From the NCBI GenBank assembly GCA_907165135.1, contig OU015569.1:496001-560000 (forward strand): a stretch of DNA of 64,000 nt, in the 5' to 3' direction. Shown one piece after another: positions 2,855-49,683 of this stretch. Below the pieces are notes generated by a model. That model did no database searches and was not told the DNA's origin. It saw only the letters and a list, made by a program, of their open reading frames with translations. A program made the translations under genes and the position numbers. The stretch comes from Oikopleura dioica (taxonomy: Eukaryota > Animalia > Chordata). Position 1 is the first letter of the stretch; the number at the start of each line of letters is the position of its first letter.

Positions 2855-5049
2855 TTAAACTTTTCATAACCTGACTCAGGTTCCTTCACAGGTTTTCGCC
2901 AAGCCGAGTCAAAATATCTCTCATAATAAAAATTAACCCTTTGAGTATTTTTGGTCCAAAATGCCCGCAAAAATTTTTTCTTTTACGAAAAAATAAGCAT
3001 TTTAATCGTTTCCTTTAGTCTTCTTAGCCAGCTGCCAGAGCTGCTGTTTTGCGATTCCGACTGTACTTTTCTGATTTTCTCTCTGTGTCCGAAGCTTAAC
3101 TCTTTGAGTCTCTGGAGCGCTTCCATCTTCTTTATCTTCTCGAAAATGAATAAAAAACGGATGGAAATTGAAAAGGGATGAAAAATAAAAAAGTTGCGCG
3201 GCGAGGACAATCCCCGATGGCGCTCCAAATCGACCCAAAAGAGAAAAATTAGAAAAAATGGCGACCAACCAGCTTCGAATCTGATTTTTATCGGCCGCTG
3301 ATTTTCAGAAGCTGATTTCTAAATTTCCCGAATCATTAAATTCACGCTTTATTTTGGCGATTCAATTCAAAGCAGCGGTTTTAAAATTTCAAAATGCAGT
3401 GAATTACTGTATTTTGAAATTTAATCAGCCCTTATTTGGATTTTATCTTTTTCATCATTTTCTTACTTAACTGTCAATTACAGTCTTGATAACAGACTCT
3501 GTAATGTTTCTTTATCTCTGCCCAAACCTGTGTAGAAATCCTGAGTCAGGGTCTGAATGAGCTTATCAGGAAAATTAGCCATTTGATAAATTCTGGCGAA
3601 GCCGCGAGTCTTTGCGGCTTCGCTCTTAAAAGCCGCTACGCGGCTTTTCATTTAAGCTTTTTCAGAACCCTGACTCAGGTTTCCGAGCCAAGCCCCCAAC
3701 TGACGCCATTTTATGCTCATTTTTATGCTATTTATTCGTCAATTTGGCATTCTAGAGAGCCAAAATCTGTAGATTGAAAGTAGGCCTTGAATGAGAGTAA
3801 AACCGCCGGAAGTGGGTCGTCTAATTCCCAAAAAAGGCAATTTACAGTCTTCGATTATTGGAGCGTGACTTCACGGGGCGTCCATTTCAATAGTCCCACA
3901 CTGGGAGGACTACATTCAAGTCAGCCTATTTACTAACTTGTCTGCACTTCAGTCTTCTTACAGGGCGCTGCAACCTGTTCGGAAACCGGAGCCAGGTCCT
4001 GACTGAAAATTCGCGGCTTCGTGTAAAAAAAGCCGCGGATTTTCATTTCAGATCGTAGAACACCCTGACTCAGGTCAGGTTATGTTGGGAAACCTGTGTA
4101 GGAGCCTGAGTTAGGGTCTGGAAGATCTAAAATCATTCAATTTGAGATCATTTAGACCCTGACTCAGGATTTTTACTCAGGTTGTCGAGCTCAGAAAACC
4201 TGAATCAGGGTCTGAAAATCCCTAATGAAAAGCCGCTACGCGGCTTTTTATTTAAGATCTTCCAGACCCTTACTCAGGTTTTTACACAGGCTCTCGAGGT
4301 CAGATTTATGGCGTGGGGTTCCCTTAATTATTCTTGCAACAAAATGAATGTCTAATTGTGAAATTCTGGCTGGAAAGCAGAACAATGAAAATATATTGGT
4401 CGATTATTGCGAAGGCGCTAATCCAGAGTGCTGAGCACATGCGCTGGCTCAACTCTTGTGACGCTGGATTTTGGAGAAACCACAAAAGTCGCGAAAAGTC
4501 GCCTGCGCTGCCAACGGTTCCAGATTCACCAGCACTATCTTTTTCGTAAAGAGAGACGAAGTTGATTTAAAAGCAAAATAAGGAAGTTCAAGAAAGCACA
4601 AAGAAGAAGGAGAATTTATGATGAATACGAATTCCAATAATTCCGGTAATTTTTAAAAATTGAAGACATAGAAGATTTGTGTGGGAAGCCTTGTGTGGGA
4701 AGCCTGTGTGGAAAACCTGAGTCAGGTTTTGAAAGACCTTTAATGAATAGCCGCTCAGCGGCTTTGCTAGTATTTGAAAATTGTTGAATATTAAACCTGA
4801 CTCAGGTTGTCGAGCCCTGTGTAAAAACCTGAGTCCTGGAAGAGCTTAAATCTCGAACACAAAGTATTTTTAAATTCAGCGGCTTCTTTTTTAAGTAAGC
4901 CGCTGCGCGGCTTTTGGTTATAGCTCTCTCGGGACCCTGACTCAGGTTTTTACACAGGTCGCCCACGAAGGATTGCAGAAAAATGACTTATTTTTTAGAA
5001 ATATTTCAAATATGATTTCAAATAATTTTCTTACTGAATATTTTAAAAT

Positions 5050-17143: not shown

Positions 17144-19088
17144 TTAAACCTCTAGATATACCCTGACACAGGTTTTTACACAGGCTCTGAAAAGCAAGAA
17201 AAAGACCCTTTCCTGCTGGGCAGCGCCTTGGTAGCCCGGTTTATGACTGTAAAAACGAACGATGCTTTTACTTATCCGATTCATTCTCTAAAAAAGGGGA
17301 TGATGGTTTTGGCAGATGAGGAGAATATTATATTCTTCTGGGTTATTCTCTCCGTCTTGAGGAAATGAAGGAAAAAAGGAAAAGAAGAAAAGGAGAATTC
17401 CCAGGGGCGAGGGCGCGCGGCCAATCAAGATTCTCCTTTTTGGAAATCCATCTTGATCACAGTTAATTCTAATTTGACTCGAAGTACAGTAAGAAGATAT
17501 TGCTGCTAATTAGAATTTTTAATGAATATTTATATTTCATATATATTTCAGTAGAGCATTTTTCTTTCAAATTACTGTTTCATAATTACAGTAGCATTCA
17601 TAAGTTCCAAAATCTCCTCTAGAATTGGTTTCAGAAACCGCAATTACGGCTTTTCCAGGGAGATTTTGGAAAGTACGAATGCTACTGTAATAGTAGTTTG
17701 AAATAGAAAATGTGCTACTCTCGACAACCTGTGTAGAAAACCTGAGTCAGGGGCTGAAAGGTCTTTCAGTAGCCCTTCAGGTTGCCGAGCCCAGAGTATA
17801 TTTGATCTAGGCTCGGCAACCTGTGCAGAAACCTGAGTCAGGGTTCAGAAGGACGGCTCAATTCTTAAATTCAGCCTTTTTCAAGACCCTGACTCAGGTT
17901 TTCTACAAAGGTTGCCGAGCTCATTTTCAAGCTGATTTGAGCATCATCAATTCTGACGATGCTCATTGTTTGAGTAAGCAGGCTTCATCGGCAAGCGGAA
18001 AACTTTGGCCCTAGCAACTCATTGTCAGTATTTGTCATTCTGGCGGTGAGTAGGCCTGGCTCAATAAAAGCGCGCTGCCGGGGCGGCTTGGCTTCAGTTT
18101 GAAATCCAAAGCAGGGTCGCGCAGCCTGTTTCAAACTCCAGTAGCGGTACTTCGAGAAAAACCCTTTAGAGCTGTCGATGTGCACGAGGATAGAATCTTT
18201 CCGACTGACCGATACTTCGTTTCGAGCGCCTCTTTCACGGGGCGTTCAAAAACTTTTCAAACTTGCGCGAAGGAGAGATTCCCGAGTCCCAAGTCGTGAG
18301 CCACGCCCTATTCCGCAAGCCGCAGTCACTCGATTTCTAGTGCCAGGCGGGGCGGCTCACGGCGACCCGAGTTTTCTTAACTCAGGGGTTCGCAAAGACT
18401 TCATCCCTTAGAGATTGTCTTACTGTAAGTCCTTCTGAGGCAAGGGGACAATTCTGGGGATGAAGGATAAAATAGCGAACACCAGAGTTTCAATCGACGA
18501 ATATGTACGAGAATTTAAAACAAAGACATTTCTTCAAATGGATATTATTTATTGAGTAATTTATTAATATATCATATATTATATATGTAAGTAAGTAGAA
18601 GCTTCTATCAATCTAGAGGGAGGGGGAGAAAGAGTTTCATTTTATTTTTATAAAAGATAAAAATCGAATATATTCCGCATCCAAGCACTTTGAAAGTTCC
18701 TGAAAACGTAAGAAAAGTCGCATTTTAAAAGTTATTTGAAATGGGTAGTTCAAACTTTGACGCTTTTTATAATTCGAAAAATTTGCGATGGCGCTATTTT
18801 TTGCTAAAAACTGGAGCACAAAATATTTTCATAACCTATTTTCATGCAAACAAGGATCTGGGCTGTCCAAATTTTCCTACCATCGTCCCGGTAGCTTCTT
18901 TATTTGACAAGCAAGGTAACCAATTCAGAATCCCAATCTACTAATCTGTCCGTTTCGCCGCGAATGACACTGAACTGATGACCTTGAAGAAAATTGGCAT
19001 CAACGAGGATGATCCCCTTTTTGACGAGATTGGTCTATTTAGAGGTCGTAGCCTTTCTACTGAATATTTTCTTCATTCCTCTTTCAAA

Positions 19089-22000
19089 ATGCTTCTTTTC
19101 TACTTTTTCTTTTTCCTTTTGGAATTCGCTGAAGGAAAAAACGAAGAATACGAAATTTTCAACCATGTCTTTGAAAATTACAACCCAGAGGTTCGTCCTT
19201 CCGACTGGACTCGGCAACCTGTGCAGAAAACCTGAGTCAGGGTCTGAGAGAAATGCTACGCGGCTTTTCATTTTAGTTTTTTCAGACCCTGACTCAGGCT
19301 TTCTACACAGGTTGCCGAGCCCAACCTACCGATGGAGATGGAGTCATAAAGGTAGTTTCTTGATGAATTTCGGGATGAACTTTTTTGTTGAAAAAAGGTG
19401 GAAATTGCACTGACAATGCAGCAAATGATAAATTTGGACGAGAAGCGCGAGACAGTAACGATTTCCGCCTTCCCAGAGGTAGAACAGTACTGTAAAAATC
19501 CGGTAAAAGAGCTTCAGTACACTTGGGTGGATCAGCGGCTAAAGTGGGAGCCGAAAAGTTCAACGAGCAGCACCTGGGCTCGGCAACCTGTGTCGAAAAC
19601 CTGAGTCAGGTTCTGAAAGAGCTAAAATGATTTTCAGAACCTGACTCAGGTTTTCTACACAGGTTGCCGAGCCCAGAGCAGCACACAATCAACATGCCAG
19701 TCGAGAAGATTTGGCAGCCCTCGATCATTCTCTACAGCAATACTGATGGCATTTACGACCCTACTGTCCCAGTCATGGCCCCTGTAAAAAGGAAAATGTT
19801 CGAGAGGAAAGAAAAACAGTAATTTCGCTCCAAAGCGAACAGAAAAAATAGCTCAGGCCGAGTTCACTGGATGCCGCCTGGAATCTTTCGCACAAAAGTT
19901 CGGAAAAAGCTTTTCAAAAATTCTAGTAATAAAATTCTAGTGCAAAATCGACGTGTCTCTCTTCCCCTTTGACTGGCAAAATTGCTCGATGGCATTTCGA
20001 ACTTACAATTACGACAAAAACGAGGTCCAGCTCGCGGCAAGAGACACTCAAGAAACGGATGCTTTTTCTTGAATCTTTTCGAAAATTGCTTTGAAAGCAA
20101 GAAAAAGTGATAATCGATCAATTCTACTACCAGAGCAATGGAGAGTGGGATCTCATCTTTTGATTTCTGGTTGAAAAAGTCGCGTTTCTTGAAAAATTTC
20201 TCATAAAAATCGTCAACCGGAAAAAGTCCCGCGAAAAGCACTTCAGACGAGCAAATGGAAGAAGTCACATTCTTCTTTATTTTCCGGCGAAAAAGTCTAT
20301 TTTACGTAAAAAGTCAGGAAGAAACCTGACTGAACAATTTGTTTTCAGATCATCACTTTCGTCGTCCCGTGCATTTTGATTACTCTTTTGTCAGTTGGAA
20401 CTTTTATAATTCCCCCAGCTTCGAATCAAAATCCACTTGGCGATTAGCTCCTTGGGCTCGGCAACCTGTGTCAAAACCTGACTCAGGGCCCCAAAAGAGC
20501 TTCGATAAAAAGCTGTGTAGGACCCTGACTCAGGTTTCTGCACAGGTTGTCAAGCCCAGGATAAGCGTCTTTATGGGACTCACCGGTTAGCTTCTCACCG
20601 GCCATCAGCTGGGCTCAGCAACTGTGTAGAAAACCTGAGTCAGTTTTTGAAGAGTTTTGAAACATAACCAATTAAGGGTGTCCCCAACGATTTATCCAAA
20701 ACATTGTTTACTTTGAGTTAACGTTGGGGACACCCTTAATTCGTTATGTTTCGAAGCTGTTCAAAACCTAACTCAGGTTTTCTACACAGGTTGCTGAGCC
20801 CAGGCCATCAGTATTTTTAACCCCTATTCTAGTGTATCTGTCGATGCTCGCTCGACTCACGCCTGAAACGGACTCGCTGCCCCTGCTTTCCCGCTTCTTG
20901 ATGGTTTCTCTGATGAGCGTCTCTCTCTCGATTCTCGCTTCCGTGCTGGTGATTTGGATTCACGAGCGTTGTTTATTACTTATTTCAATTTTGAATTCCA
21001 CGCTGTGAGAATTCGGACTGTGATAAACTTACTTAAATAGTATAATGGGAATAGAAATTGTGATGTTCCCGAGTCACTCAGGCGCATCATCTTTCAGCCC
21101 TGCTCCAAGCTCTTATTTTCTAAATTGTTCGCCATTGAGAGGAAAGGATAAATCCTTGCTGCGCCTTTTTTAATTCTCATTCTAAGAACTCTCGAGGAAC
21201 AACTCTTCTCGACCTTGCAAAGGAAGAAAAACTGCTCGCAAAGAATCTTGAAAGGAGAAACACGCACTCGCGAAAACGACTTCGGCCAAAGTGGTTTCAT
21301 GGGCTTTTATTTTTCAACTCGATTTTGGGCTCGGCGACCTGTGTAGAAACCTGAGTCAGGGTTCTGAGGAGCTTGAATACCGCGATTCTCGCTTCTGACT
21401 GAATGTTTTTCGGCTGGGCTCGGCAACCTGAGAAGAAAACCTGAGTCAGGGTCTGAAAGAACTGAAATGACCCTGACTCAGGTTTTCTACTCAGGTTGCA
21501 GAGTCCAGTTTTTCGGTCATACTTCAGCAAAAGGGGAGATGCAATTGGCGGCTAAAAGCAGAATAAGACGAAAAAGCCGCTCTTCCCGCGGCTAAATTTC
21601 CATTTATTCGAAGCCGCAACTATTGCAATTCTTTCAGCAGTAGTTTTACTGAAATAAGACCGAAAAACAGTCAGTCGAAACTAAGAATCGCGGTGAGATT
21701 CAAGCTCTTTCAGGACCCTGACTCAGGTTTCGACACAAGTCGCCGAGCCCTGTTACGATTCCAATGCAAGAAGCCGCCGAGGAGATTTACTCCACCGACA
21801 AGTTTCTCGAAAAGAAGCAGCAACAAAAGGCGCTGAAAGATCGTTGGATGCTGCTGGCGATGATTGTTGACCGGTAAAGATAAATCGGAGGTCTCTTTCG
21901 CGAGTTTTCAGAATTTTACTGATTCTGTACATGATTTACATCGTTTCCCTCGGAATCTGGTTCGTCAACGAAGTCTTTTACTGCCGCACTCTTCCGTCAA

Positions 22001-22123
22001 GCGCGTTTCCACTCGAAAATGACCCTGGATACAGTAATCTCAACTGTTGTTCCTGCTTATTTTCTTTTCTTAGATTTTACGAAGCAATGGGACAGAAGAT
22101 GCGATCAACAATCAGCAATTTAA
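19089..22123 (+). CDS. Cys-loop ligand-gated ion channel subunit (nAChR/5-HT3-like, non-alpha); MITE-interrupted exons and A-run frameshifts
   Basis: Signal peptide [43 protein letters not shown], Cys-loop [16 protein letters not shown]1 [13 protein letters not shown]2 [17 protein letters not shown]3, and M4 after [10 protein letters not shown]. No vicinal cysteines seen. Confidence 0.88.
19205..19324. mobile_element. MITE copy inside coding sequence of the ion channel gene
   Basis: TSD CCTTCCGA (19197-19204) / CCTACCGA (19325-19332). Confidence 0.8.
19574..19676. mobile_element. MITE copy inside coding sequence of the ion channel gene
   Basis: Perfect TSD AGCAGCAC (19566-19573 / 19677-19684); termini CTGGGCTCGG...CCGAGCCCAG. 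Confidence 0.9.
20450..20559. mobile_element. MITE copy within the M2-helix coding sequence
   Basis: Degenerate TSD GATTAGCT (20442) / GATAAGCG (20560); ends in CCCAG. Confidence 0.75.
20609..20803. mobile_element. Intronic MITE copy carrying the nested 60-bp TTAA mini-element
   Basis: Perfect TSD GCCATCAG (20601-20608 / 20804-20811). Confidence 0.9.
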
Positions 22124-22586
22124 AAATAGAATCTGATAATAAAATCATTAAAAAACGACTCTTGTTTGTTTCTGTGAATCAAAATGAGCTCAGCAACCTG
22201 TGTAGAAAACCTGAGTCAGGGTCGAAAGAAACGGCTTCGCAAAATTATTATTTCAATCAATTTTCTAACCCTGAGTCAGGTTTTCTACACAGGTTGCCGA
22301 GGCCAGAGTATATTTGATCAAAGCTCGGCAACTTGTGCAGAAACCTGAGTCAGGGTTCAGAAAGACGGCTCAATTCTTAAATTCAACCTTTTTCAGGACC
22401 CTGACTCAGGTTTTCTACACAGATTGCGGAGCCCGAGTTTTATTAAAAGTGTTTTGTTTCAGTTTCAAAAATAGTTGATACAGGTAGTCAAAGTGATACA
22501 GGTTCAGTGATGAATTTATAAAAATAGGGTTGAATTGGCAAAAAGCAAAATTGACGAGTTGAGGGCTGAGAGAGAGTCGAAGGAGC

Positions 22587-33345: not shown

Positions 33346-35391
<2,046 letters not shown>

Positions 35392-42319: not shown

Positions 42320-45300
42320 CTAGTTGCGCTCTTTCTTGAGCGCTTTGTTCTTGTTTTGGCTTTGCTGCATTTCGACGGCGTTTTTGCGCTGGATGAAGGC
42401 GCTCATTTCGTCTTCCAGCGCCTGGCGTCGCTCTTCCAGCCGCCGCTTGTCGTCCGTGTGTCGTTTTCGAAGAGTCTCGAACTTCTCGTGCAGCTGCTGC
42501 TCCGCCTCCTTCAGCTCGTTTTCCTTTTCTTTCACTCGCGCCACGAATGTCTGTTCGTGAAAATCAACAATTAAAAAAAGGACTTGTTTCGAAGATCTAC
42601 CTGTCTCATTTCGTCTTCTTTGTCTTGCATGTTGCGCTGGTGTTCGACTCGCTTGTTTTCGTAGACTTCTTGGAGCAGGGCTGCCCAATCGAATCGGAAT
42701 CCGATCGGAAATCCGATCCGATCGGAATCGGATCGGTAATCGGTCGGATCGGATGAGGAGATTTTAGTCATGTCCGATCGGGAAAATCGGTTCCGATCGG
42801 TAAAATCGGATCGGAATTTCCGATCGGAAAATTCGGATCCCCGTCGGATAGAACCACTAAAAAGCTACCAAAAATGGCGCCAGGGACTAAATTCACATAG
42901 GCCAAGGACTTAATTCACATAGGCCAGGGACTTAATTCACATAGGCCAAGGACTTAATTCACATAGGCCAGGGACTTAATTCACATAGGCCAGGGACTTT
43001 ATTCACATAGGCTTTTTGTAGACTTATTTTTCTTTATTCTGCTCCAAATTGGTGGAGGTGTGAGTCGAGATATTTCAATTCTCTCTTTTGCACCAAGTTG
43101 GGGAGGGTCTGTAGGGTGTTAAATAAGCTTTTGGTGTCAACACCATAACTGGCGGTGGAGTAATCAGCTCCTCAAAAATACACTAAAATCTTAGGAAAAA
43201 ATCTTGATGACGTCATTTATCCACCACCAACACTGGTGTTTGCGCCAAACATGTCAAGAATGTTTGATATTGATGTAAGGAACACCCCTTAGTGATGAAA
43301 TTGCAGATCTATAGGCTGTAAGCACTTTTCAATTTTATTATGTCCCCACGACCAGTCGGAAATTCCGGATTCAGGACGTCATTGCTCCACCACTAGTGAT
43401 GTTGAAGGCACCAAAAGCTTATTTAACACTACATGACACAAAAGAGAGAACTAAAAATTTTTGAATTTAACGCATGAACGCACGAAATTTTTTCCTGCTG
43501 AACGCATATTGCGCAGATTTCTGCGCAGCACCTTTAGAGCGCTCTAGCGACGATTGTGGTCGAGTTTTGAGAAAACCAAAGTTATCAAAATAAAGCTCAG
43601 ACGCTTGCAAACAAGCTCATAATAATTTAAAATCTTAACCCTAACCCGAACCTCACTAAAAATAGTGATTTCTAGAGTTCCCCGAAAATGAGCCAGTTTT
43701 GTGCATTTTTTTTTCTATTTCATTGATCTCAAATACAAATGTACAAAATAGATATTCTTGATAAAGTTTATGTTTGATTCGATGCATAAATGCGATAAAA
43801 CGTCTAAAAATATTTTTATCGAGGGATAAATTAGTGCAGAACTGTTGAAATGCTAACAAAAGATTTTTCGAGAATATCGGAAATTTTCGTTCTGAAGCCA
43901 AATTTTTATCCTGAAGTTAAAATTTTTTTTCGATGCCAGATTCGGATTCCTCATCGAAAAAGAGCTCCTAAAGTGGGGGTCCATTTAAAATTTTGGTCAA
44001 GTAAAATATGAGATATCGAGCTTTAAAGGGGCTCTGCGCAGAAATCTGCGCAATATGCGTTCAAGCGTTAAGGTAGTCAAAAGTGCTCCACCATTTTGCA
44101 GCAGTATAAAAACCTGTTTCTACTGTCGCCATGAACACTATTGAAAAAATTGCCACTTTTTGAAAATTGAAAATCTTCCTTGATTTTTCCGATCGGAAAA
44201 TTTTCCGATCGGACATGTTTTTCCGATCGGAATTGGAAAATCCGATCGGAATCGGTAATCGGATCGGAAATCGGTCGGATCGGATGAGGTTCGGATCGGA
44301 TCGGAATCGGATCGCCGAGACCAAGATTTCTTGTCCGATTGGGCAGCCCTGCTTGGAGGTTGAAATTGTTCGACTGAGCATCGTCGTTGAAGCCCATTTC
44401 TCGCAGTTTGTTGCGTCTGTGCAGCTAAAAACAAATGTCAATTTACTGACTGTAAGAGGATCAAGAGGACATTCAGGGACATTTAAAGACATCTGGCGAC
44501 ATTCACAGACATCTAGAAGAATCTCGAGACATCCTAAGACATCTTTAGACATCAATAGACGTCAATAGACATGATCTCTACTCTAGGAACATCCGTAAAC
44601 ATCTATAGACATCAATAGACATGGATAGGCATCCAGAGTTATCTAAAGACATCTTTGAGGATGTTTAAACATTCATAGAAGTCTGTGGACATCTGTAGAT
44701 ATCTAAGTTGCCATTGAGACATCGCCCGAGAACCCGGGGCGATCAATAGCGATCTCTTTTTGGAAAAGGTTTCGGAGGTCTAAGTTTTTCTTTAGCTACC
44801 TCGTAGTGCTTAGTGTGAGTAGTAGAGCGAAGATCTTCCAAGTTCGTTCTCAAGATCATTTCTCGGAGGTGCACGAAGTCGCAGTGGGCGTCGTTTTCAA
44901 CCTAAAAATCGAAGATGAAAGGAATAAGACCCAGAAAAGAGGGACTCACCTGCACTGTGCCCCAAGGATACTGTCTTGCGCGGACCATTCTGTTTCCGAC
45001 TTTGATTTCGTCCATAGATCCAACCACGGCGAAGGGCAAGAGACTGTTCATTTTCGCGTTTAGCGCAGAAACTGACTGGTCGTCTAGAATTCATTTTAGC
45101 CCGGCTTGATAGCAAGGAAGAGATAAAAACGCTCAACAATCAACGATAAAGGAATAAATAAGATAATAATAAAACATCAAACGTTTAATCTTTTGCGACT
45201 AAAAGTTGTGCCCCGAACACTGAAAACATTCAAGTTTTACGCTGTGTCTTTTTGCTTTGCGGCGTGATTCTTTGCCGTCTGTTATTTTGTCAAGGAAACT

Positions 45301-48999: not shown

Positions 49000-49163
49000 T
49001 CGGGTCGGCAACCTGTGTTAAAACCTGAGTCAGGGTTCTGAAAGAGCTTAAATATATAGCCACGAAAATGACAACCTCATAGGTTTCCTTTGAAGCCGCG
49101 GCTATTCATTAAAGCTCTTTCAGAACCCTGACTCAGGTTTCTACACAGGTTGCCGAGCCCAAG
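49000..49163. mobile_element. MITE copy interrupting a putative minus-strand exon
   Basis: TSD GCGCTATC (48992) / TCGCTATC (49164); minus-strand flanks read MSIPSKYYSLGVTEVLSDVQIA | QEYSDDPSVGISLASGQPVQ then GT. Confidence 0.65.
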
Positions 49164-49683
49164 TCGCTATCTGCACATCAGAAAGCACTTCAGTAACTCC
49201 AAGACTGTAATACTTCGAGGGAATGCTCATTCTTTCTTTATCTTTCTCCTCCCAACCCAAAACCCGGTCCAAACAACAAAAAGAAGAGAAACTAGAAACT
49301 TTTCTTTTTTCATGAAATAAGTGAATTTATTTTCTATTGAGCACTGTCGAGCACGAGAACAATAAATAAACCGACCGTGATTATTACTTTTTGGTGAAGC
49401 CCGCATTTTTGTTGAAGCAAAAATCGAAATATGAAATTTTTGAAATGGTAAAATCAGAAAAGTCGCTCTTTGGAAAAAAAAAGAATAAAAATTTTTCAGT
49501 AAGATTTTTTCTCAACACAACAACAGTATTCAATTGTACAGTAATGTAAATGCGATCTTCAAATTCTACAAAATGGAACAAGTGGAAAATTTTTATTTTC
49601 TTCGTTGTTTTCAGGATCGTTTTTCAGGATCAATTTTTTCTTTTTTTATTCTTCATGCCTCCGAGTCTGGATTGTTGTTGTTT

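Follow-up and report, generated by a model that had tools for sequence, protein, structure and literature searches.

The DNA analyzed here (the window, 64,000 nt in all) is identical to positions ~496001-560000 of contig OU015569.1 in assembly GCA_907165135.1 and belongs to the X-specific region of the Okinawan Oikopleura dioica OKI2018_I69. On its plus strand, at 19089-22040 (end approximate), lies a gene for a Cys-loop receptor subunit whose best named relatives are vertebrate muscle nicotinic acetylcholine receptor (nAChR) beta-1-like proteins, at ~40% identity, and the Pfam domains Neur_chan_LBD and Neur_chan_memb were found on the open reading frames (ORFs) of its relatives. A coding exon of this muscle-type subunit gene is broken by a foldback miniature inverted-repeat transposable element (MITE) of 103 nt at 19574-19676. 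Comparison with sister lineages leads us to propose that the exonic MITEs of this gene may be removed from the RNA as introns, with an exact product at 19574, an account that, taken as a whole, we hold to be about evenly poised between right and wrong.

A receptor gene with five foldback elements

The element at 19574 (no strand assigned, as for all copies of its family below) has arms of ~45 nt and the ends CTGGG...CCCAG. It starts CTGGGCTCGG and finishes CCGAGCCCAG; over a longer stretch its start reads CTGGGCTCGGCAACCTGTG, the other end being the reverse complement. A GC dinucleotide lies at 19578-79 and the terminal CAG at 19674-76. The two copies of the target-site duplication, both AGCAGCAC, are matched at 8/8 positions and lie at 19566-19573 on the left and 19677-19684 on the right. 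Reading through the element meets a stop after 19 element-encoded codons. Folded as RNA with its flanks, it forms one near-perfect stem of -90.5 kcal/mol, compared to -32.6 ± 3.8 for shuffles (z = -15.2).

The family to which this element belongs is abundant, with 62 matches of a 16-nt terminal-repeat core (<=3 mismatches) in the window compared to 0.18 expected by chance. These matches, together with the perfect duplications, bear out an initial annotation of the window, which had described an abundant hAT-like MITE with 8-bp duplications. The same annotation held that most copies run CTGGG...CCCAG, with CAGGG/CCCTG variants near 3961 and 21752, and this also stands: the trinucleotide outside the core is CTG at 22 of the 62 ends (14 of the 27 best conserved) and CAG at only three (3964, 4816 and 21749), each on a diverged repeat. 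The boundary CTGGG...CCCAG with its 8-bp duplication is fixed by three copies with perfect duplications (19574, 20609 and 21414). The duplication is likewise matched at 8/8 positions at 49001, and at 7/8 at 19205 and 33565. Most of the family, 58 of the 62 matches, is found in positions 1-34000, at about one element per kb, and 34001-64000 is almost free of it. In the Illumina DNA run X1, summed contig depth is ~90,000 over the 19574 element compared to ~40 on its flanks.

Within the receptor gene there are five copies, four in coding exons (19205, 19574, 20450 and 21325) and one in an intron (20609). The older copy in coding exon 1, at 19205-19324, has ends CTGGAC...CCCAA and the duplication CCTTCCGA / CCTACCGA and is absent in the relatives; its exact removal leaves 12 codons collinear with theirs. 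An old copy in the M1-M2 coding exon, at 20450-20559, is also present in a second X1 haplotype contig, and the intron that would take it out exactly, 20442-20559, reads GA...AG. In the coding exon of the M3-M4 loop lies an old composite copy, at 21325-21752, with ends TTGGG...CCCTG, whose flanks, judged by eye, are collinear with WFHG...NSIP.QEAA of the relatives; nested in it is a younger copy, at 21414-21508, with the duplication TTTTTCGG. The intronic copy, at 20609-20803, has the perfect duplication GCCATCAG and sits in a GT-AG intron (20586-20832) that would be 44 nt without the MITE; contig L003 of the relatives has the intron of this position already spliced.

The relatives are seven contigs (L001 to L007) of sister lineages, drawn from marine metatranscriptomes and metagenomes and 82-89% identical to the window at the nucleotide level. 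ORFs of a sister lineage were first recovered by exon query, and the contigs carrying them plus four more were then taken. Some are genomic or unspliced, with L006 covering neighboring genes; L001, L002 and L003 are partly spliced, and L007 is mostly spliced. At 19574 the site is empty in all seven contigs, which read AAT CAG CAG CAC ACG ATC, the sequence obtained from the window by taking away the element together with one copy of the duplication, with the single copy appearing as CAGCAGCAC. No family repeat was found in ~15 kb of the relatives' sequence, and the burst is therefore specific to the lineage of the window.

Age of the exonic copies and constraint on the gene

The exonic copies differ in apparent age. 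Arms lie 2-7% from the family consensus at 19574, 4-9% at 19205, and ~20% at both 20450 and 21325, and the duplications of the four match at 8/8, 7/8, 6/8, and 5/8 positions, respectively, although these estimates come from few sites and a consensus that may mix subfamilies, which weakens the argument from age.

Any reading of the gene has to deal with two places where the assembly breaks its frame. At the A-run of 19554-19557 (plus strand) the assembly lacks one base relative to the frame common to the relatives, so that the exon upstream of 19574 is one base out of frame, and at the A-run of 20428-20431 (plus strand) it lacks two where the relatives read NQKIHLAIS. The OKI2018_I69 assembly was built from Nanopore data of a single mature male, haploid for the sex-specific regions, and its authors give an error estimate of 1.3% and name homopolymers as a weakness (PMC8008620). 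Contigs of run X1 show six fixed +1/+2 insertions relative to the assembly, all in homopolymers elsewhere in the same 3.3 kb (19017, 19390 [+AA], 19903, 19910, 20173, and 21226). Homopolymers in the receptor-gene stretch seem to be under-called by the assembly. Because of these six nearby cases and the weakness named in the assembly paper, both frameshifts are attributed here to putative assembly errors. The public model of the gene, XSR.g13383 (OKI2018_I69), is a 147-residue fragment at 19416-20072 that begins at an internal Met and finishes by reading into an intron. It places a GT-AG intron inside the MITE, joining to LPSPEQHT, but judged against the frame of the relatives this intron merely absorbs the one-base assembly error and is no splicing evidence either way.

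With exact removal of the copies at 19205, 19574, and 20450, the introns taken out, and one and two bases added at the two A-runs, the gene yields 261 codons that align to the spliced cDNA of the relatives with no indel, no stop, and 14 amino-acid differences. The dN/dS between window and relatives is 0.016-0.023 (dN 0.034-0.040, with dS saturated at 1.7-2.3), and among the relatives it is 0.012-0.019. The number of nonsynonymous differences (Nd) between window and relatives is 21.5-23.5, compared to ~19 expected at the baseline rate, and any unconstrained period must therefore have been shorter than ~2% neutral divergence. Outgroup polarization of the amino-acid changes gave no result, as the outgroups are too different at the variable sites. 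The possibility of an old pseudogene was rejected on the basis of dN/dS and collinearity.

The copies at 19205, 20450, and 21325 appear to predate any loss of constraint. As these older exonic copies seem to coexist with a working gene, removal at the RNA level would be required, and we consider in-frame removal at that level to be probable. In the mechanism that we propose, a young, lineage-specific, hAT-like foldback MITE has inserted in a coding exon of the X-specific nicotinic-receptor subunit gene of Okinawan O. dioica, and the elements of this gene would be removed from the pre-mRNA like introns, the older exonic ones probably having been so for a long time. The initial annotation had cast the family as an active intron generator, and the position of exonic copies in a strongly constrained gene makes this idea plausible, if by an indirect route; the specific junction that it proposed fares less well, as discussed below.

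The youngest exonic copy also allows for a different history, in which 19574 is a fresh disruptive insertion that is retained in RNA, leaving an X allele that is null or weak in a gene that is dispensable, silent, or pseudogenizing in the culture line. The perfect duplication and nearly identical arms do mark a very young copy, zero transcripts were found, and the assembly presents two frameshifts and a truncated gene model. In addition, positions 1-34000 contain 58 of the 62 repeat ends, so that selection may be weak in this part of the window. The coding sequence argues otherwise, with a dN/dS of 0.02, no branch excess, and 261 codons free of stops even though three older exonic copies are present. 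Both frameshifts fall at A-runs, and the same assembly is short of homopolymer bases at six further positions within 3.3 kb. The animal sequenced was a mature male (PMC8008620), and since the region is haploid in it, there was no second allele to cover for a null. We therefore see a null allele as a minority possibility, unlikely while still deserving serious consideration.

The RNA data do little to separate retention from removal. No junction reads were found over 18900-22200 in three RNA runs, which gave 0-4 reads, 90-95% alike and confined to the most conserved exons; the runs most likely represent a different lineage of O. dioica, and little can be read into their silence. The idea that this silence reflects a silent gene was considered and rejected in view of the level of identity and the placement of those few reads. 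A 56-residue peptide spanning the junction had no match in a protein word index, a result that is uninformative, as an 88-residue ORF from a relative, with long identical stretches, was also unmatched.

Junctions and intron borders

The functional product at 19574 would arise by exact loss of 111 nt, comprising the element and one copy of the duplication, which would restore the reading KFNEQH. After such removal the Trp-to-Trp spacing (W.D..L.W to IW.P) is 18 residues, as it is in 27 of 27 full-length homologues with the motif, and a profile of 30 homologues gives a score of 272.5, compared to 267.5 for a variant one residue shorter and 265.8 for one longer by 12 nt. Provided that the element is removed, we favor this exact junction over others with reasonable confidence. 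The base that precedes the left copy of the duplication is also the one on which the element ends, so that the same mRNA results from ten cut positions, with border pairs GA..CA, AG..AG, GC..GA, CA..AG, AG..GC, GC..CA, CA..AG, AC..GC, CC..CA, and CT..AC. A G*-AG pair is not found among the ten. Introns of O. dioica are mostly GT-AG or G*-AG, classes that were reportedly set out by Denoeud and colleagues in 2010, and the species is regarded as following these rules with one U2AF. In the receptor gene, an exact G*-AG solution exists only at 20442-20559, where GA from the duplication is combined with the terminal CAG, in agreement with a separate remark of the initial annotation on that place.

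A junction of a different kind was put forward in the initial annotation, in which the donor is GC at element positions 5-6 (19578-79) and the acceptor is the terminal CAG, so that 99 nt are taken out, CTGG and the duplication are left behind, and 12 nt more than after exact removal remain in frame as LEQH. The arithmetic is right at 19574, and GC donors are among the non-canonical splice classes described for O. dioica. Of the three sites at which this +12 rule was said to work, 19574 and 33565 hold up, whereas at 49001 the ends are degenerate and the AG is supplied by the duplication rather than by a terminal CAG. The 33565 copy, element and duplication together, has its final 21 nt unchanged in a wild lineage that has diverged by ~13-15% in the surrounding non-coding DNA, which fits a 3' end that is in use. 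Several observations speak against the rule. It cannot apply at 19205, which lacks the GC (CTGGAC...CCCAA), or at 21325, which ends in CCCTG, and at 20450 extra bases at the left end put GC...CAG out of frame. Every site enumerated offers about ten in-frame G*-AG pairs that lie no more than 12 nt or so from exact removal, GC...CAG at 19574 being one of them, and frame preservation is therefore weak evidence. The proposed donor and acceptor also base-pair to one another at the foot of the -90.5 kcal/mol hairpin, the resulting protein would have a Trp-to-Trp spacing of 22 residues instead of 18, and zero reads support the junction in the few that the RNA runs, probably of another lineage, provided. 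We regard the GC...CAG junction as very improbable, and the accompanying idea, by which a CTG end became CAG so as to provide an acceptor, is speculation.

Evidence that borders of the kind needed for exact removal may be tolerated comes from the relatives. In three sister lineages (L001; L004 and L005; L006) the exon encoding FPFD|WQNC contains an element with ends CAGGGCT...AGCCCTG or a near variant, at L001:953-1023 and L006:3385-3465 and at the same place in L004 and L005. A duplication of 7-8 bp accompanies it; its terminal stem is conserved and its interior has diverged. From the cDNA contigs L002 (otherwise equal to L001) and L007 (99-100% identical to L006) the element is exactly missing. 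The borders possible for its removal are TT..AY, TG..NT, GA..TT, AC..TG, CC..GA, and CA..AC, GT or AG being impossible, and the Cys-loop signature has to be contiguous for a working protein, which weighs in favor of removal. The window has no element at this position and has instead, 28 nt upstream, a GT-AG intron (19898-19940) missing in the relatives. A further intron of L006 (L006:3228-3304), removed in L007, has borders GA..TT or AA..TG, with no 3' AG and no repeat to blame; at the corresponding position, the intron of the window (19792-19851) is GA..AG.

The introns of the receptor gene in the window include ordinary short GT-AG ones, alongside which are four with non-canonical borders: 19792-19851 (GA-AG), 20052-20106 (GA-AA/AA-AG), 20162-20226 (GA-AA/AT-AG), and 20970-21040 (TG-AG). 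Each of these folds so that its two ends pair (z -1.9 to -4.4). Of four GT-AG introns tested, three lack such a fold, and the fourth (20306-20348) has an internal hairpin like the core of the MITE. Two of the four non-canonical introns are absent in the relatives. The non-canonical introns may be decayed foldback elements.

The GA...AG introns of the gene itself (as at 19792-19851) and of the relatives also lend something to a more conventional route, by which 19574 would be spliced at nearby cryptic G*-AG sites to give a near-exact product. One such pair, GA at 19565 with AG at 19677-78, would take out 114 nt at the cost of one residue (KFN|QHT), and in-frame pairs are available at -3, -6, +6, and +9 nt. 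The loop of the receptor could accommodate small indels in the case of the 21325 copy. At 19574, in contrast, they alter the invariant 18-residue spacing, with the drop in profile score from 272.5 to 267.5, and the element of the relatives is removed exactly without the use of any AG. Cryptic splicing of this type strikes us as improbable, if less so than the GC...CAG junction.

Three observations, namely, the AG-less removal in relatives, the GA..TT/AA..TG intron, and the end-to-end folding of the non-canonical introns, point to a broader possibility. O. dioica might excise duplication-flanked foldback transposons exactly, whatever their border dinucleotides, with the terminal stem juxtaposing the duplications to guide the cut, and bursts of MITEs might then be an ongoing source of lineage-specific, hairpin-forming, non-canonical introns. 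We offer this generalization tentatively and think it somewhat doubtful.

A number of points weigh against removal as we envisage it. The borders needed at 19574 fall outside the G*-AG classes known for O. dioica, and this copy, with its perfect duplication and near-perfect arms, is young and possibly a fresh null or polymorphic insertion, unlike the time-tested older copies. The evidence for exact removal in the relatives consists of assembled contigs from mixed wild samples, in which polymorphism or reverse-transcriptase jumping between the duplications could produce the same picture. No RNA reads of the Okinawan lineage were found, and species-labelled RNA contig sets contain almost none of the sequence words of the gene, with one metatranscriptome run (X8) containing 8-9% of the words. 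Finally, the public gene model is truncated, and the coding sequence of the assembly contains two frameshifts for which homopolymer error is our attribution.

Known systems and copies elsewhere in the window

The closest known system is found in another larvacean, Fritillaria borealis (Henriet et al. 2019, as summarized in PMC11282704 and PMC13326754), in which MITE-derived non-canonical introns are described genome-wide, with <10% GT/AG, borders mostly AG/AC and AG/AT with YAY triplets, and duplicated U2AF subunits. The two systems have in common small elements bounded by terminal inverted repeats and target-site duplications, lineage-specific coding positions, and a short direct repeat at the borders. 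They differ in that removal with non-GT/AG ends is known in F. borealis, whereas at 19574 removal is deduced from the DNA and the border pairs would not be the same. The combination that marks an F. borealis-type intron, an element with inverted repeats and duplication whose location is lineage-specific and falls within a coding exon under conservation, is present at 19574.

Introners of Micromonas, Aureococcus, and other organisms (Huff et al. 2016; Gozashti et al. 2022; PMC11282704) resemble the MITE family in being multi-copy, non-autonomous DNA transposons that insert in genes, and the many near-identical copies expected of introners are found here, with 62 repeat ends in 64 kb. The introner scheme, by which one splice site comes from the end of the element and the other from the duplication, fits exactly at 20442-20559. 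At 19574 it does not, since the duplication begins with AG and offers no G-type donor. Unlike introners as described there, the O. dioica copies are palindromic, making orientation irrelevant, and many lie outside genes. Nonconventional introns of euglenids (PMC11282704) share the pairing of ends by inverted repeats, non-canonical borders, and duplication-like repeats at the junction, although the organisms are unrelated and euglenid removal produces circles.

With hAT-superfamily MITEs the family shares an 8-bp duplication, short size, lack of coding capacity, and, in the window, CAGGG...CCCTG variants. The hAT terminal consensus is YARNG, from which the majority end CTGGG departs, having T at position 2. 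Intron gain by transposon insertion has previously been listed for Oikopleura (PMC3443670, Table 1); in the literature searched, we found no paper on this MITE family, on MITE-derived introns in O. dioica, or on AG-less removal in this species.

Should the elements be spliced out, a single gene would display transposon-born introns at four ages, beginning with a pristine copy, continuing with ones whose ends have worn away, and finishing with short hairpin introns. It would do so in a chordate that can be cultured and injected in the laboratory, and the tolerance of odd borders seen in Fritillaria would not be limited to that genus. Should the young copy instead be a null allele, it would represent ordinary transposon load on a sex-linked region.

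Elsewhere in the window, three pairs of facing MITE ends (17791/17810, 22303/22322, and 26123/26142) enclose an identical spacer of 12 nt, atcaaatatact. The shared spacer suggests a composite unit of two MITEs that may itself have been copied. The core search of the window gave no match to the terminal repeat inside a 1.7-kb element at 42669-44358. A 164-nt copy at 49001-49164 interrupts a minus-strand open frame and has the degenerate ends ACTTGGG...CCGACCCG (coding strand) and the duplication CGCTATCT.

The 190-nt copy at 33565-33754, with the duplication CTTTTCAG / CTTCTCAG, lies directly 5' of a conserved coding segment for a trypsin-like protease and is shared with a contig of a wild Tara Oceans metagenome (L009:1-631, compared to window 33677-34298). 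Identity between the two is 85-87% in non-coding DNA and 98.3% in the adjoining ORF, where four differences checked by hand are all synonymous in the frame assigned by the initial annotation, and that frame is therefore the coding frame downstream. The annotation had also placed this copy within an exon. While the downstream frame is coding, no ATG precedes the element and the duplication CTTTTCAG is acceptor-like, so that the copy may instead lie at the end of an intron. Its arm carries 10 differences from the Tara Oceans contig, all outside the identical 3'-terminal stretch, and by this comparison the copy is old, tolerated, and constrained at its 3' end.

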